This document shows, piece after piece, positions 106-59,883 of a stretch of DNA of 64,000 bases (the stretch's first letter is position 1; each line of letters begins with the position of its first letter). The notes beneath the pieces are model-generated. The model saw nothing but the letters and a program-made list of their open reading frames with translations. It was not told where the DNA came from and ran no database searches. Source of the DNA: Octopus bimaculoides (Eukaryota). Made by a program: the position numbers and the translations under genes. Where the stretch lies: positions 4,815,812 through 4,879,811 of the forward strand of contig NC_068988.1 of assembly GCF_001194135.2 (NCBI RefSeq). Reading direction: 5' to 3'.

Positions 106-278
106 TGCTGCATAATGTTTTCGCAAATATGCTTGGTCCTGGTGGGCCCGAACCTCCATCGCCATCTCTCCTTGTAACAATATAGATTTTGTATCGTGTA
201 CTTGGTCGAAGTTCTTGAATTATGTGGCTACATACTCTTTTTTCACGACAGAACGTGTGGTAAATGAGACCCATCATC
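106..278 (-). CDS. Exon F: C-terminal half of the FN3 domain (RMMGLIYHTFCREKRVCSHIIQELRPSTRYKIYIVTRRDGDGGSGPPGPSIFAKTLCS)
   Basis: Not in the ORF track; translated by hand. TTATTTGCAG acceptor ending at 279 and GTAAG donor starting at 105. Length 173 nt, phase 2 in (matching exon E), phase 1 out. Contains the L-x-P-x-T-x-Y FN3 motif and a G-x-G-G-x-G-x-P-G-P motif recalled from Tie and R2B PTP first FN3 domains. Confidence 0.9.
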
Positions 279-1851
279 CTGCAAATAATATTAGTCATTA
301 TAATTCGTATCATAGAAGCTATAATGGGTAACATCTGTTTGGGATGAAATATACGAATTGTACCAAAGTGTGTTTTGGGAAATGTTATGTCAATCAATTG
401 TAAAATCATTCATTATGGTGGAGTTTATTACCAACCTGAGAAGGGGAAAATCAGTGGTTGAGCATCGAACAAAAATTACTTTATTTAGTTTCATCCTTTT
501 TATATCTGGTTACATGGCTTGAATCCAAGAACAGCGTTTCCTTCTCTCCGTCTGACGTAGGAAACTATGTGAGTATCAACATATATAACCGACTAAATTT
601 ACTTGAACATGGTATCTAACCATAGCCTTATGATATCAGAATAAGCACTATTTCATGGCAAAAAGTAAGCAAAAGCTTAATCCGACTTCGAATTTGGCCG
701 TCAGTTGATATACTTAGCGTAAGAGAAATACTTCGTAATAATTATCTTTATAATAATTTTTATCGAATTGGCACTCCATTTTAAATCTCTAACTGCATAC
801 TTTAAAAGAACTCAAACCACAACTGTTAGGTGACTAAATTCTTTTTTAATGCCTAGTCATATGTTATACACAACAAATATTCATTTATTAGATCCATGAC
901 AGTTATTGTCATGGATATATATTTACGACGCTGAGACGCGGATGCTGTAGACCACTCTGTCACTGACGGCAAGCTGAATCCACGATGAATTCAGTCCATT
1001 GATTTGGCATTTAGATATTAAGATGTTTCCCCGTCTTTTTAAAATATAGGACTGTTCGTAAGAAAAAAAATATCAAATCTTGTATGTAGGAAATGTGGAA
1101 GATCAAAAGGTTAGTCGAAGCGACATGAATTTGTTTAGAACAAAAATGGTATTCGTTATCGAAGGAATAACATTTTTGTCTACGTGATTCTTTTCATTAC
1201 GTGAAAAGAATTTGTTTGAAAAACTATGAACGTCACAGTATCATTCCTACAGAGGTCAAATTGGAGTTTCACAATTATGATTTGATAAAAATATGACATA
1301 GAATAATCACGTATTTAAACTAAATTCTATGACCAAGCAGAAGAATGCGATGGGCTAGTAGAGTATAAAAACATCAACCATTCCTTGTGCATTTGGATTT
1401 CAAATCCAATATGGAACATCTTTTATCTCATTGAAACATACTCATTCAATATAATCCATCTGTGTTATTGACGATAAACCCTCTCCTGCAAAATGTTGGT
1501 CTGGTATGTAGGAACAAGAAAGAAAATGTTTCATAACAATAGGAAATTGGAATAATATTGAATTTTGTATAAACAGTTATAGTCTTTTGAATTCAGAAAT
1601 ATAGACATACATCTTCTCTTAGGAAGCGATATGCGTAACATTACAAGGATATCAGCAAAAGTCTCGTATCATCATCGTCATCATCATCATCATCACCTTT
1701 TGAAAGAGACTTAACAACAGTCTACCAAAAGTTGAAAGTACATATTTATAAAATATGCTTCATAACTATATAAAGTACATATGCCTAAAGTACATATGTA
1801 TAGGATATTATAATTTTGTTCATGCTAAAGAAAGTAATATTGCTAACTTAC

Positions 1852-2017
1852 CTAAAATTAGTTTCCGCTGCTGTTTTCACCCATATTGTATACCATAGGA
1901 TTGGGGGGTCACCAATATCTCCATTTCGTTGGTTCCATGGAGTCCACTCAATCGTCATGTTTGTAGCTGATATTTTATTCCTGGGCACCACAGGTTTAGA
2001 TCGTAAAACAGGCGGTT
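1852..2017 (-). CDS. Exon E: N-terminal half of a fibronectin type III domain (EPPVLRSKPVVPRNKISATNMTIEWTPWNQRNGDIGDPPILWYTIWVKTAAETNF)
   Basis: TTTATTGTAG acceptor ending at 2018 and GTAAG donor starting at 1851. Length 166 nt, phase 1 in, phase 2 out. FN3 B-strand Trp (IEW) and C-strand Tyr (WYTI) are present. Confidence 0.9.
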
Positions 2018-2418
2018 CTACAATAAACAAACACATTTTGAAATTACATGTTATACAGATATTGTAATACTGGTGACTAATTTTGATTGATATTCGATTT
2101 TTGATATATCTGATAATATACATTATATATATATAGTTTATTCAAAGAAGCAAACAATTAAAAAAAAACAGAGAGGAAAAACACAAAAAGACGAACGCGA
2201 GGACGTGCATAAGAAATATATTAATGAGACATTTGGTGAGGGGAAAAAGTTGTTAACGTTTCGAGTATAAGCTCTTCGCCGGAAGCAGGAAAGTCCAAAG
2301 AGAAGGATGGAAAAATAAAGAAAAATCGCCAAAAGTCCACGTGCGATTACATTTCTGATATATGTGTGTATGTATATATATATATATATATACATATATA
2401 TATATATATATATATATA

Positions 2419-56423: not shown

Positions 56424-58151
56424 GGAAGAAAATCGAAGGAAAAGACAAAACAATTGGAGATAGCTAAGACTTGGAATTGGGGCTTAGGAAGCCTCTATGA
56501 GTATACTGACAGAGCTGACAGGATAAATGTATCATGCAGAGAGGATGTGCCTAGTCGATGAGTACTAGGGGTGGGGTTCAGGAAAGATAGCAACAGAAAG
56601 CAAAAGGGAGAAGAAAGAAAGTTTATTACAGTTTGCAATATCAATGTAATGGGGATGTCGAAGACGGCTTCAGAAATATCGGAAATGGTAAAAATCATGC
56701 CCAGAACGAGGTGGCAGGTGTTGACTTTAGAAATGAAGACAATAAATTGTTCTCTGTTTTATCGCTATAAGGAATGCACGTTCATGGAGGAGACCATAAA
56801 GGACTGAAAGAATACAATGGTATCGATATAGCTCACACTGAACTTTGACTAACTTGAGCTCATGCTGGTAACCAGCGCCACATCGGAACATGTCATTGAG
56901 AGTAAATGCGAGTTCAGCGATATGGAAAGAACTTTTGGTAGCATAATTCTGTTGAAATATACTGCTTTCGTTAGTTTTGAAAATAATGAAGAACTTCGTG
57001 AATAACTTTGTCGTTATTAAGCTGGTAATATGCGTGGGCTGCTGAAAGCATTCACATACCTATATTAATAAATATGATAAGTCATATCTTATATTGTTGT
57101 AGTTAATTCAAATATTTAATTTTAAGATAGAAAACTGCTTTTTGTTTCTTTACGTTTCATATGTGACCAATAACTATGATGTTCTATGCCTGAAAATGCA
57201 TTAAGTAGATATATAGACAGTTGTACATAGAAGAAACATTCCCCATACATATACAATTTCGTACATTTCGTATATTTTTCTCTATCTATGGGGTGGCGTG
57301 GGCGTGCACAACAGCTGTGTGTCAGTGTAGATATTCAACTATTCAAATGAAAGAGGCATTCTAAAGAAAACTCAGAGTAAGTACCCGAAACGTTATCTCC
57401 AGGAAGGAAACACATTCGTTGAAGCGTGAATATCATTGAAGAGAAAACATTTAATGGAAAATCAATGTCGGCCAAGCAACAAGCTGTCTGGAAATTACAA
57501 AAGTGGAAACCATTGAAAACTTTGAAAATAAATAAATAAAACTAAACAAAGGCTATAAAACAGAGATAATAAAACATGGTAGCGTATAGAATTCGTAATC
57601 ATTGATCTTGGCCAACTAAAGCGAAGTTTATGATCAAATAAGAGATGGTGTATGGATGATGACGAAATAACGAGTGAGGTTAAAAGAAATCACAAGTACA
57701 GGATGAGATTTTGTCTAAAAGATTTTTAAAAAAACAAGATTGCAAAAGCTTACATAGTGCAAGATAACAGAGAATGCAGTGTTTGATGGATACAGCGCAA
57801 GTTAATTTGTGAAAAATTTCTAATAACTGCAAAACACCAAACTGCAAAATTCTAAACATTTTATAAGGCACATAAATTCACATACAGACATACATACGCG
57901 TATGTTTCTCTTAAGTGCATGTTTGTGTAGATGTCTATATTATACGCAAGTGTATGGTTATAATTGCGTCTGTGCCCATGTGTACATGTATGTGTGTGTG
58001 TGTTTCTATATGAGCACGAGTTGTTGTAACACATTTCCAGATTTTACAATAAGTCTCAATGCATAAAATAATTATAACTTCTTAGACATTAAAACGTGAG
58101 TGATCTCTGAGAATCAGACCCATATTCCTTTGCCTAAACTACTTTAAGCCA

Positions 58152-58233
58152 ACATTGGGAAACAGTGGCCTACATTTGGAAACAGTGGCCTACATTTGGA
58201 AACAGTGGCCTACATTTGGAAACAGTGGCCTAC
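58152..58233. repeat. 20-bp minisatellite, 4 copies (ACATTTGGAAACAGTGGCCT)
   Basis: Copies start at 58152, 58172, 58192 and 58212; copy 1 has one T>G difference. Confidence 0.96.
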
Positions 58234-59724
58234 TTTACAATTATTTCAGTTGGAAAGTGCTTGCCGTTATAAGGTCAGACTATATGTAATCGGTGTGTGT
58301 CATGGTGAGAAACTTCTTGAAACCGTCTCTGAACTCAGCTAAAATACGATTGATGAATGAGTTCACGAATAAGGTTCCTCAGACTGTAAATCTAGGCAAT
58401 TGTCACAGTTTAAAATTCATTCCTATCCTTAAGACTATACGTATTCAGTATACACATGACCAACCGGCCTGAAAACATCGTTTAGAATAACAAGAAATGA
58501 AGAAGAAAGAAGATTAGAAGATATAAGGATATAAATACTCTATAAACCATTCTGGCTGTTTGAGGTGAAATAAAGGAACTTGCTTCTACTCATCTCAAAA
58601 CCTCCTACTCATCTCAAAAAGTAAAGTTTACGTGATTTGAGTTTAAGGAGAAATTTGTTGCTTATATTCACTAACTTACCGATTCTTAGAACCAATGAAA
58701 GCTCATTTAAGAGGTTGCTTAGTGTGCTATGAATTACAGAAGAATCATCCTCGATTCACGTCCTACCGATTTAAAAAGAAAAAAAGAAACACACCTTTAA
58801 TCATGTAGTCTTTGATATATAAAGTGACGACATGGTCAGGCGTGAAATGTCTTTCATTATGTTCTCTTTTTTTTTTTCTTTTTCAATTAGGAATACCAAA
58901 GAGTAAGGGTTAAATAACAATCTGTCATTAACTCCTCCGTGAATCCATGGGAGTTTCATCAGATGGTAGCAAGGACGAAGATGCTAGGTAACAAAACTAC
59001 AAATCAAAGCTTACTTTTAACCTAATTCGAATGATGACGTATTGAAAATTTGATGTAGCCAACTGCAACAACTCTAACCGGCAAAAGTAAATTAATCCGT
59101 TCTTGCTTCAGTCAATATCAGAGAATTTAATAAATTCCGCCGTAAATGAGTTAAACGCAGACTTGTGTCAATTTTAGAAGTGGAGAAGTTTACTTTTAGA
59201 AGGAAACCTAAATGTCTAGTTTGAAAGAAATTCCGGCAATTAAAGTTGCAGAATCGTTACAATTGTAGATGTAGATATTTAATGCAAGAAAGAAATATAA
59301 TCGATGGAAACTACTCATTTCTCCTAATGTAATTGATAGCGTAAGGAGGAGTTTAAATTTATTAGTTCATAAACTCCATTTATGGAAGTCGTCCAAATAC
59401 TGTTGCCTTTGTGAGAACGGCTAACACGTCCTATTGATCCATTCAGCTGTGGAGTTTTGAGCTGCAAAATGTATTGCAATGAACTCCATAATCGGAGGTT
59501 ATTAACTAATACACTACAAGTAATACTTCATTAATTTCACCAAGTTTCAGTGAAATGACCGAACTTAATATCCGTTTATTTCTCATTCTTGAATTAGTCT
59601 ACACAAAGACATTAATACACTAATATACGTACACATACACACACATATATATTATGTACTTGCATATATGTCTATATGGAAAATTATGGAAGAAAGATTG
59701 ATAGAAGGGGAGTGGGCAACTTAC

Positions 59725-59883
59725 ATAATTGACAGCCAGGTCCCCAGTAATCATCTGCACATCCTGAATAACAAGTTCCGTCCAACTTATCGCAAGGTTC
59801 ATCTCTTTGACAATGGCATTTAAATTTGCATTTATATCCAAAATACTGGCTAGAACATTTGCCTTGTAATTCATCAATCGATT
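59725..59883 (-). CDS. Exon A of a multi-exon receptor gene: laminin-type/MEGF-type EGF-like module (SIDELQGKCSSQYFGYKCKFKCHCQRDEPCDKLDGTCYSGCADDYWGPGCQL)
   Basis: Minus strand: polypyrimidine tract + CAG acceptor ending at 59884 and GTAAG donor starting at 59724. Length 159 nt, phase 1-1. The C-x4-(F/Y)G-x2-C-x3-C-H-C...C...G-x-C...GC...(Y/W)-x-G-x2-C pattern is typical of MEGF/Tie-type EGF repeats. Confidence 0.92.

Follow-up and report, generated by a model that had tools for sequence, protein, structure and literature searches.

A kringle-bearing receptor gene of Octopus bimaculoides and its likely place among mollusc type-IIB-like receptor tyrosine phosphatases

Introduction

To our knowledge, the receptor protein tyrosine phosphatases of type IIB (R2B) have been studied almost only in vertebrates, where the tip formed by the MAM, immunoglobulin-like (Ig), and first fibronectin type III (FN3) domains sets homophilic specificity. 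This MAM-Ig-FN1 array is the minimal homophilic dimerization unit of PTPRM and PTPRK, and the loop of the fourth FN3 domain (FN4) is cut by furin in the vertebrate enzymes (PMC9800333). Here we examine a stretch of 64,000 nucleotides from Octopus bimaculoides (RefSeq assembly GCF_001194135.2, contig NC_068988.1, positions 4,815,812 to 4,879,811; hereafter “the window”), AT-rich eukaryotic DNA with nine N runs. We read it, with a probability of roughly 85%, as carrying eight exons from the 5′ portion of a single gene on the minus strand, a cephalopod orthologue of a type-IIB-like (PTPmu/kappa/T/U-like) receptor protein tyrosine phosphatase that occurs across molluscs. In the order of transcription, the window encodes an EGF-like module (EGF1), a kringle, a second EGF-like module (EGF2), then a third one (EGF3), a basic 18-residue linker, or nothing, and finally an Ig-like domain and the first FN3 domain (FN3-1).

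The closest described systems share parts of this plan. Vertebrate R2B proteins (PTPRM, PTPRK, PTPRT, and PTPRU) have an Ig domain followed by FN3-1 with the motif GEGGxGxPGP, colinear in the octopus, and the mollusc orthologues share with them a membrane span, two protein tyrosine phosphatase (PTP) domains, and a set of four FN3 domains whose final member is of the PTPRU type and has both GDNKTY and a basic furin-loop site. They differ from the octopus protein, which lacks MAM, begins with EGF-kringle-EGF-EGF, and has an alternatively spliced module beside the Ig domain. Tie1 and Tie2 also have three 8-cysteine EGF modules, then Ig, then FN3 with the same glycine-rich motif, and they give a near-top structural match; however, the orthologues have a phosphatase as their catalytic domain, the Ig pair at the N terminus is missing, and a kringle follows EGF1. 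ROR1/ROR2, the MuSK of some species, and Kremen are likewise type-I membrane receptors whose ectodomain has one kringle, but its neighbors and the catalytic domain differ, and Pfam found neither the Frizzled/CRD that adjoins the kringle in ROR nor the WSC and CUB domains of Kremen in the octopus protein or its orthologues. PTPRT/PTPRM-like phosphatases of echinoderms, hemichordates, and chelicerates share the Ig-FN3 core, in many cases together with Fn3_PTPRU and tandem PTP domains, but have different heads, with no kringle in those scanned.

Transcription and splice forms of the octopus gene

An initial annotation of the window had proposed six minus-strand exons with canonical splice sites, and their coordinates and lengths were reproduced exactly. 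The EGF1, kringle, EGF2, Ig, FN3a, and FN3b exons (the last two encoding the halves of FN3-1) each have a polypyrimidine-AG acceptor and a GT(A/G)AG donor, and their join of 1,161 nt is a single open frame with phase-1 borders; the frame is stop free, as claimed, and contains 386 whole codons rather than 387. The EGF1, kringle, EGF2, and Ig exons are symmetric (1-1), with lengths that are multiples of three.

Ten runs labeled as RNA, from the same organism, contain the Ig exon, and the contigs of eight were examined. In the 3,867-nt contig of run X4, the six exons occupy positions 268-426, 427-660, 661-798, 946-1236, 1237-1402, and 1403-1575, so that the kringle slot is exactly 234 nt, with zero bases unaccounted for. 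EGF1 is covered exactly by contigs of X4, X8, X9, and X12. The Ig, FN3a, and FN3b exons are contiguous at the predicted borders in X4, X8, and X12; the X9 contig has the Ig/FN3a join only and ends inside FN3a. At the EGF1/kringle, kringle/EGF2, and Ig/FN3a junctions, the unmatched contig ends are identical to the border of the neighboring exon. The kringle and EGF3 exons were placed through such loose ends and contig coordinates, and because these account for every base, the kringle exon lies in the same transcript as the others. The receptor ectodomain does, as first proposed, come from one gene, and the concern that its kringle exon might belong to another transcript is answered by contigs that link the exons. 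The gene is real and expressed, with all exons in one transcript.

An erroneous architecture could have arisen if exons of different transcripts had been combined or if gaps in the assembly had caused a false join. The window does contain nine N gaps, one of which (17460-17469) is flanked by a 64- to 74-nt duplicate that suggests an imperfect join. Single transcript contigs nevertheless span all exons without unaccounted bases, all nine N runs keep clear of the exons, falling within introns or upstream of the first exon, and the domain order is identical in gastropod and bivalve proteins. The RNA contigs refute such an artefact, to which we assign a negligible probability. An exon concealed in an assembly gap was also rejected, since the transcript coordinates leave no base unaccounted for.

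The position between EGF2 and Ig is alternatively spliced. The X4 contig has 147 nt there (799-945), which the loose ends assign to the EGF3 exon, and the insert is also 147 nt in X8. This exon, which encodes EEACPANTYGWDCSQKCYCRDPSNCHRLRGPLPSCECKEGYFNRPNCQR, an 8-cysteine EGF module, lies between EGF2 and Ig in X4, X8, X5, X10, X13, and X12. In the X9 contig, EGF2, a 54-nt alternative exon, and Ig are joined, and EGF3 is replaced; the 54-nt exon was not seen in X4, X8, or X12. Run X12 contains an assembly bubble in which a 205-nt contig with EGF3 (30 + 145 + 30; depth, 13.4) is paired with a 58-nt contig that leads directly from EGF2 to Ig (depth, 14.2), and its mixed loose-end consensus is explained entirely by EGF3 and Ig partners. 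EGF2 has, in all, three downstream partners: EGF3, the 54-nt exon, and Ig. The main isoform comprises seven exons in the window, EGF3 included, with three variants at the EGF3 position. The six-exon form, with EGF2 joined directly to Ig, is a real isoform found in one run (X12) at a depth about equal to that of the EGF3 form. The order EGF-kringle-EGF-Ig-FN3 given by the initial annotation is therefore that of a genuine isoform, but EGF3, present in the main form, and the 54-nt exon had been missed.

Beyond the low end of the window, the contigs of X12 and X13 run on for 4,552 nt after the FN3b exon, and both stop there. This shared stop suggests that the 3′ end is genuine and that the mRNA is 6.35 kb or longer (the X13 contig measures 6,350 nt). 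At the opposite end, the exon upstream of EGF1 ends in ...TTACTTTTATGGATGTTTACCCACCCCACCG, encoding LLLWMFTHPT, a stretch that resembles a signal peptide's hydrophobic core. This exon is absent from the readable window, and its candidate sites are beyond position 64000 or in the gaps at 60726-60864 and 61931-62513.

Assignment to the receptor phosphatases

A phmmer/HMMER search of 1.84 billion representative proteins with the octopus Ig-FN3 segment returned as its best match a “receptor-type tyrosine-protein phosphatase T-like” protein of the gastropod Gigantopelta aegis (P0002; 1,586 amino acids, 50% identity, E value of 1.8e-59) and as its second a “PTPRT-like protein” of the bivalve Mya arenaria (P0003; 1,279 amino acids, 39% identity, E value of 1.1e-45). 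Both proteins have, by Pfam, a kringle on the N-terminal side, fn3 domains, Fn3_PTPRU, and two Y_phosphatase domains. The seven-exon octopus protein, of 435 residues, is colinear end to end with that of Gigantopelta (51% identity) and that of Mya (46%); in the former alignment, octopus EGF3 is matched to the third EGF module, and EGF1 directly follows the signal peptide in the orthologues. The FN3b exon ends at a phase-1 donor, the same point at which the Gigantopelta protein goes on into FN3-2. From there the Gigantopelta protein has 1,124 residues remaining, or ∼3.4 kb of coding sequence, which with ∼1.2 kb of untranslated region (UTR) fits the 4,552 nt of the octopus transcript. From this fit and from orthologues that unite a kringle with PTP domains, we therefore infer that the octopus gene belongs, by orthology, among the phosphatases with tandem PTP domains. 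The initial annotation had left the enzyme class as either kinase or phosphatase; the catalytic part does lie outside the window, as it stated, but the orthologues decide for a phosphatase.

Comparison with proteins of known structure agrees with this placement. The octopus Ig-FN3 segment aligns with PTPmu (2V5Y) along its whole length (query positions 4 to 209; E value of 6.7e-8) and with PTPkappa (8A1F; E value of 3.9e-5), whereas Tie2 aligns over residues 173 to 202 only, the 30-residue glycine-rich motif of the RRDGDGGSGPPGP region, with E values of 0.13 to 0.7. The Ig domain and four FN3 domains of Gigantopelta match 2V5Y with an E value of 6.5e-38 in two colinear blocks (query positions 4 to 216 and 349 to 639) that make up most of the length and take in a basic GKHKRE site, aligned to the FN4 loop of PTPmu, and the motif GDNKTYxG. 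By Pfam these FN3 domains are three fn3 and one Fn3_PTPRU. Among PDB chains consisting of the first phosphatase domain (D1) only, Gigantopelta D1 scores highest with PTPRT, PTPRK, and PTPRM. In an AlphaFold model of the Gigantopelta head, the Ig-FN3 part is confident (pLDDT, 80 to 94) and the EGF-kringle part falls below 50; a Foldseek search with the confident part placed PTPRK (two 8A1F chains) and PTPRM in the top three positions. The octopus thus has the single Ig domain followed by an FN3-1 homologous to the PTPRM/PTPRK-type core, as seen with 2V5Y, 8A1F, and Foldseek. The PTPmu, PTPkappa, and Tie2 alignments, with Foldseek, also bear out the earlier statement that an Ig-FN3 core with GxGGxGxPGP is common to type-IIB phosphatases and Tie receptors, and “Tie/R2B-like core” was a fair description.

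This shared core raises the alternative of a Tie-like receptor tyrosine kinase, in which EGF modules, Ig, and FN3 with RRGEGGxGxPGP would represent the Tie core with an added kringle and the kinase would lie off the window. The glycine-rich motif does match that of Tie2, Tie receptors have three EGF modules immediately ahead of Ig-FN3, and a Tie-1-like kinase of the echinoderm Acanthaster (P0017; E value of 1.4e-18) is among the relatives. Foldseek places Tie2 (4K0V) fourth (E value of 2e-11 over 310 columns), and because this score is nearly level with those of PTPRK and PTPRM, structure alone does not separate them. However, the two closest full-length relatives and most others scanned carry PTP domains, with one kinase (P0017) and a few proteins without a catalytic domain, and P0017 is 26% identical, against 50% and 39% for the kringle-bearing phosphatases. 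Sequence similarity to Tie2 is limited to the 30 residues mentioned above, and the EGF match reaches an E value of only ∼4. Nor is the Tie order Ig-Ig-EGFx3-Ig-FN3x3 found: in the orthologues the Ig pair at the N terminus is absent, and they have an inserted kringle and four FN3 domains. The balance of the evidence is clearly on the side of a phosphatase, and we regard a Tie kinase as very improbable.

It is also conceivable that the cephalopod gene encodes an ectodomain only, secreted or anchored, with the phosphatase part lost or in a separate gene. No cephalopod protein was recovered in which a kringle and PTP occur together, a cuttlefish gene model stops after EGF2, and the last homologue search gave no cephalopod match. 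That cuttlefish model is poor, however, its first 330 residues being low-complexity junk. The 4,552 nt of mRNA past FN3-1, seen in two independent runs, exceeds a usual 3′ UTR after a short tail and matches the remaining 1,124 codons and UTR of the orthologue, and the phase-1 donor of the last exon in the window coincides with the continuation into FN3-2 in Gigantopelta. An ectodomain-only product is accordingly improbable.

Several points weigh against a type-IIB-like phosphatase, in addition to the near-level Tie2 structural score. Pfam found no MAM domain, the defining N-terminal domain of type IIB (architecture in PMC9800333), in the octopus window protein or in the Gigantopelta and Mya proteins. 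With Gigantopelta D1, LAR-type tandem-domain PDB entries outscore the single-domain type-IIB entries, and the affinity to type IIB is expressed in pairwise scores rather than in a phylogeny of phosphatase domains. FN3-2 to FN3-4, the membrane span, and the catalytic parts of the octopus protein, all off the window, are predicted from the orthologues, and any function of the head, whether homophilic or ligand binding, is proposed wholly by analogy. Presumably, by textbook plasminogen numbering, the octopus kringle also lacks the canonical Asp-x-Asp, with x-D-S/T where plasminogen has D-x-D.

Domains and exons

The kringle of the octopus head is genuine (PF00051; 46.8 bits versus a cutoff of 34.3; E value of 3.8e-12), and its six cysteines are invariant in an alignment of four species. 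It matches plasminogen kringle 1 with an E value of 1.6e-12 and ROR1/ROR2 with values from 2.6e-9 (a larger ROR2 ectodomain chain) to ∼4e-5 (kringle-only chains), and is at least as near the plasminogen/HGF kringles (E value of ∼1e-12) as those of ROR. Four residues of the PHxH loop are missing (WEDQ----DIYKP) that are kept in the cuttlefish, gastropod, and bivalve orthologues; the deletion is real, because the RNA contigs show no differences from the genome. On the same plasminogen numbering, which we take as our guide, the aromatic and arginine positions of lysine-binding kringles are retained. Classical lysine binding by this kringle appears doubtful.

In the octopus protein, fn3 scores barely above the Pfam cutoff, and Ig falls under it and is supported by alignment to the Ig domains of PTPmu and PTPkappa. 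No EGF module had a Pfam match, and EGF2-EGF3 resembles MEGF-type repeats (6U11) weakly (E value of 1.5e-4) and the Tie2 EGFs with an E value of ∼4. The modules are classed as EGF-like mainly from the pattern C-x8-C-x3-C-x-C...C, which is invariant in four species. The coordinates of all eight exons are given in Table 1. As far as the Ig domain, every module corresponds to one exon of phase 1-1. This explains how exon shuffling could have brought in a kringle and how EGF3 can be left out or exchanged with the frame intact.

Table 1. Exons of the octopus receptor gene in the window
Exon	Position	Strand	Length (nt)	Phase	Encoded feature and remarks
EGF1	59725..59883	-	159	1-1	First 8-cysteine EGF-like module (SIDELQGKC...GPGCQL)
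Kringle	49849..50082	-	234	1-1	One complete kringle, six cysteines
EGF2	43735..43872	-	138	1-1	Second EGF-like module; contigs in four runs
Alternative	25687..25740	-	54	1-1	Strongly basic linker ESQRKRHLLKGSFYGRRR; AG/GT borders
EGF3	22660..22806	-	147	1-1	Third EGF-like module (EEACPANTYGWDC...NRPNCQR); AG/GT borders
Ig	13893..14183	-	291	1-1	Ig-like domain
FN3a	1852..2017	-	166		First half of first FN3 domain
FN3b	106..278	-	173		Second half of first FN3 domain; carries the RRDGDGGSGPPGP motif

Relatives and phyletic spread

Further molluscs carry parts of the same protein. A relative in Pomacea canaliculata has a kringle, fn3, Fn3_PTPRU, and PTP, and one in Tegillarca granosa has a kringle and Fn3_PTPRU; C-terminal fragments from Candidula, Littorina, and Nucella were recovered in the same later search as the Pomacea protein. 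The gene model of the cuttlefish Acanthosepion pharaonis contains EGF-kringle-EGF at 70 to 72% identity. The word-indexed homologue searches were insensitive, with one match in one and five in another. The EGF-kringle head architecture is common to gastropods and bivalves and is not specific to cephalopods.

Other relatives sharing the Ig-FN3 core are mostly receptor phosphatases of echinoderms, hemichordates, spiders, and scorpions, and Fn3_PTPRU and tandem PTP domains occur in many of them. The modules at their N termini include discoidin (Patiria, P0037), trefoil (Ptychodera, P0054), and, in others, EGF or Ig repeats, and a kringle was present in 0 of 20 relatives scanned outside the molluscs. 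The variety of N-terminal modules on the Patiria, Ptychodera, and spider and scorpion (P0041 and P0073) proteins points to recurrent head swapping, and the kringle head seems to be the form taken in molluscs by a chassis with a repeatedly exchanged tip. Automatic names are unreliable in this group: several of these same four phosphatases are dubbed “angiopoietin-1 receptor-like” or “MEGF10.”

The initial annotation had suggested a lineage-specific receptor, possibly from an expanded mollusc or cephalopod family. The kringle form was confined to molluscs among the relatives scanned, but the receptor is mollusc wide rather than cephalopod specific. Expansion found no support in cephalopods or molluscs, with one gene per species where visible and two kringle-bearing representatives at 50% clustering. 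The kringle was rightly called unusual in this setting: the literature that we searched contained nothing relevant on receptor phosphatases with a kringle, and it yielded no account of how type-IIB phosphatases are distributed among invertebrates. No well-characterized family with this architecture was found there, yet the proteins are in public databases under NCBI's automatic name “PTPRT-like.” The architecture is therefore unusual and apparently unstudied rather than unseen. The family belongs to a well-known class, the receptor tyrosine phosphatases.

Repeats and assembly features of the introns

No tRNA or Rfam family was found in the window. A retroelement-like open reading frame (ORF) within an intron contains the 10-N gap at 17460-17469, which is flanked by the two copies of a direct duplication of ∼64 to 74 nt (17386-17459 versus 17470-17543, one mismatch). 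This duplication resembles overlapping contig ends that were not merged, and the gap is probably spurious. About 10 telomere-like CCCTAA units occur at 19488-19570, directly after the gap at 19475-19487, in the intron between the Ig and EGF3 exons; an interstitial telomeric repeat is one possible origin, and a misjoined scaffold end is another. The longer gaps (2419, 5582, 28503, 32670, 39329, 60726, and 61931) all adjoin (TA)n, (CA)n, (TATG)n, or (GATA)n microsatellites.

Remnants of mariner/Mos1-type transposases are located in introns at 30411-30716 (minus strand; Pfam HTH_48, E value of 3.3e-6) and 12052-12384 (plus strand; weak helix-turn-helix matches only). Two intronic ORFs (17137-17520 and 37210-37572) are retroelement-like in appearance, with no significant Pfam match. 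Very high RNA depth at ∼2.0 to 2.9 kb and 5.2 to 6.2 kb comes from unrelated repeat-containing contigs and not from exons.

Proposed function and significance

The orthologues and the 4.55 kb of further mRNA suggest that in the octopus protein FN3-1 would be followed by three further FN3 domains, of which the last would be of the PTPRU type and bear a basic KHKR site in its furin loop, and then by a membrane span and two phosphatase domains. It would then be a membrane protein of type I, and its FN4 would probably contain a convertase site. On the model of PTPRM and PTPRK, a rigid, rod-like ectodomain may hold the phosphatase at cell-cell contacts (PMC9800333, PMC7959691), and D1 may dephosphorylate tyrosines of junction or signaling proteins, as in the vertebrate type-IIB enzymes.

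The R2B adhesive mechanism cannot simply be transferred to this protein, because the MAM domain of the minimal homophilic unit is missing, and for the same reason the recognition event is likely to be different. With EGF-kringle-EGF-EGF in place of MAM, the binding partner, whether self or a separate ligand, would probably differ from that of the vertebrate receptors: another protein may be the partner of the kringle, or a new kind of self-contact may involve the EGF-kringle head. Skipping of EGF3, or its exchange for the basic linker (with RKR and RRR), would alter the reach, flexibility, and charge of the neck and possibly its proteolytic processing.

For annotation, the exon set is now fixed and three splice forms of the head are documented, an incremental advance, since the proteins were already predicted in databases. 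In wider terms, the protein would add one more kind of receptor with a kringle to the three represented by ROR, MuSK, and Kremen. The chassis Ig-FN3x4-PTP-PTP appears to accept varied recognition modules (kringle, discoidin, trefoil, and EGF) through the shuffling of phase 1-1 exons, and this variety of heads would offer a natural test of how the ectodomain tip governs the location and targets of a phosphatase.

We put forward, as a speculative proposal that we consider possible but rather doubtful, that molluscs swapped the homophilic MAM tip for an EGF-flanked kringle, so that a phosphatase that had sensed adhesion became the receptor of a separate ligand, and that cephalopods tune this receptor through three-way splicing of the neck (EGF3, the basic 18-residue linker with its dibasic sites, or nothing). 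If this is true, the gene would be part of a new receptor-ligand system in mollusc, possibly cephalopod neural, signaling and would provide a clear natural example of a head swap on a conserved phosphatase chassis.

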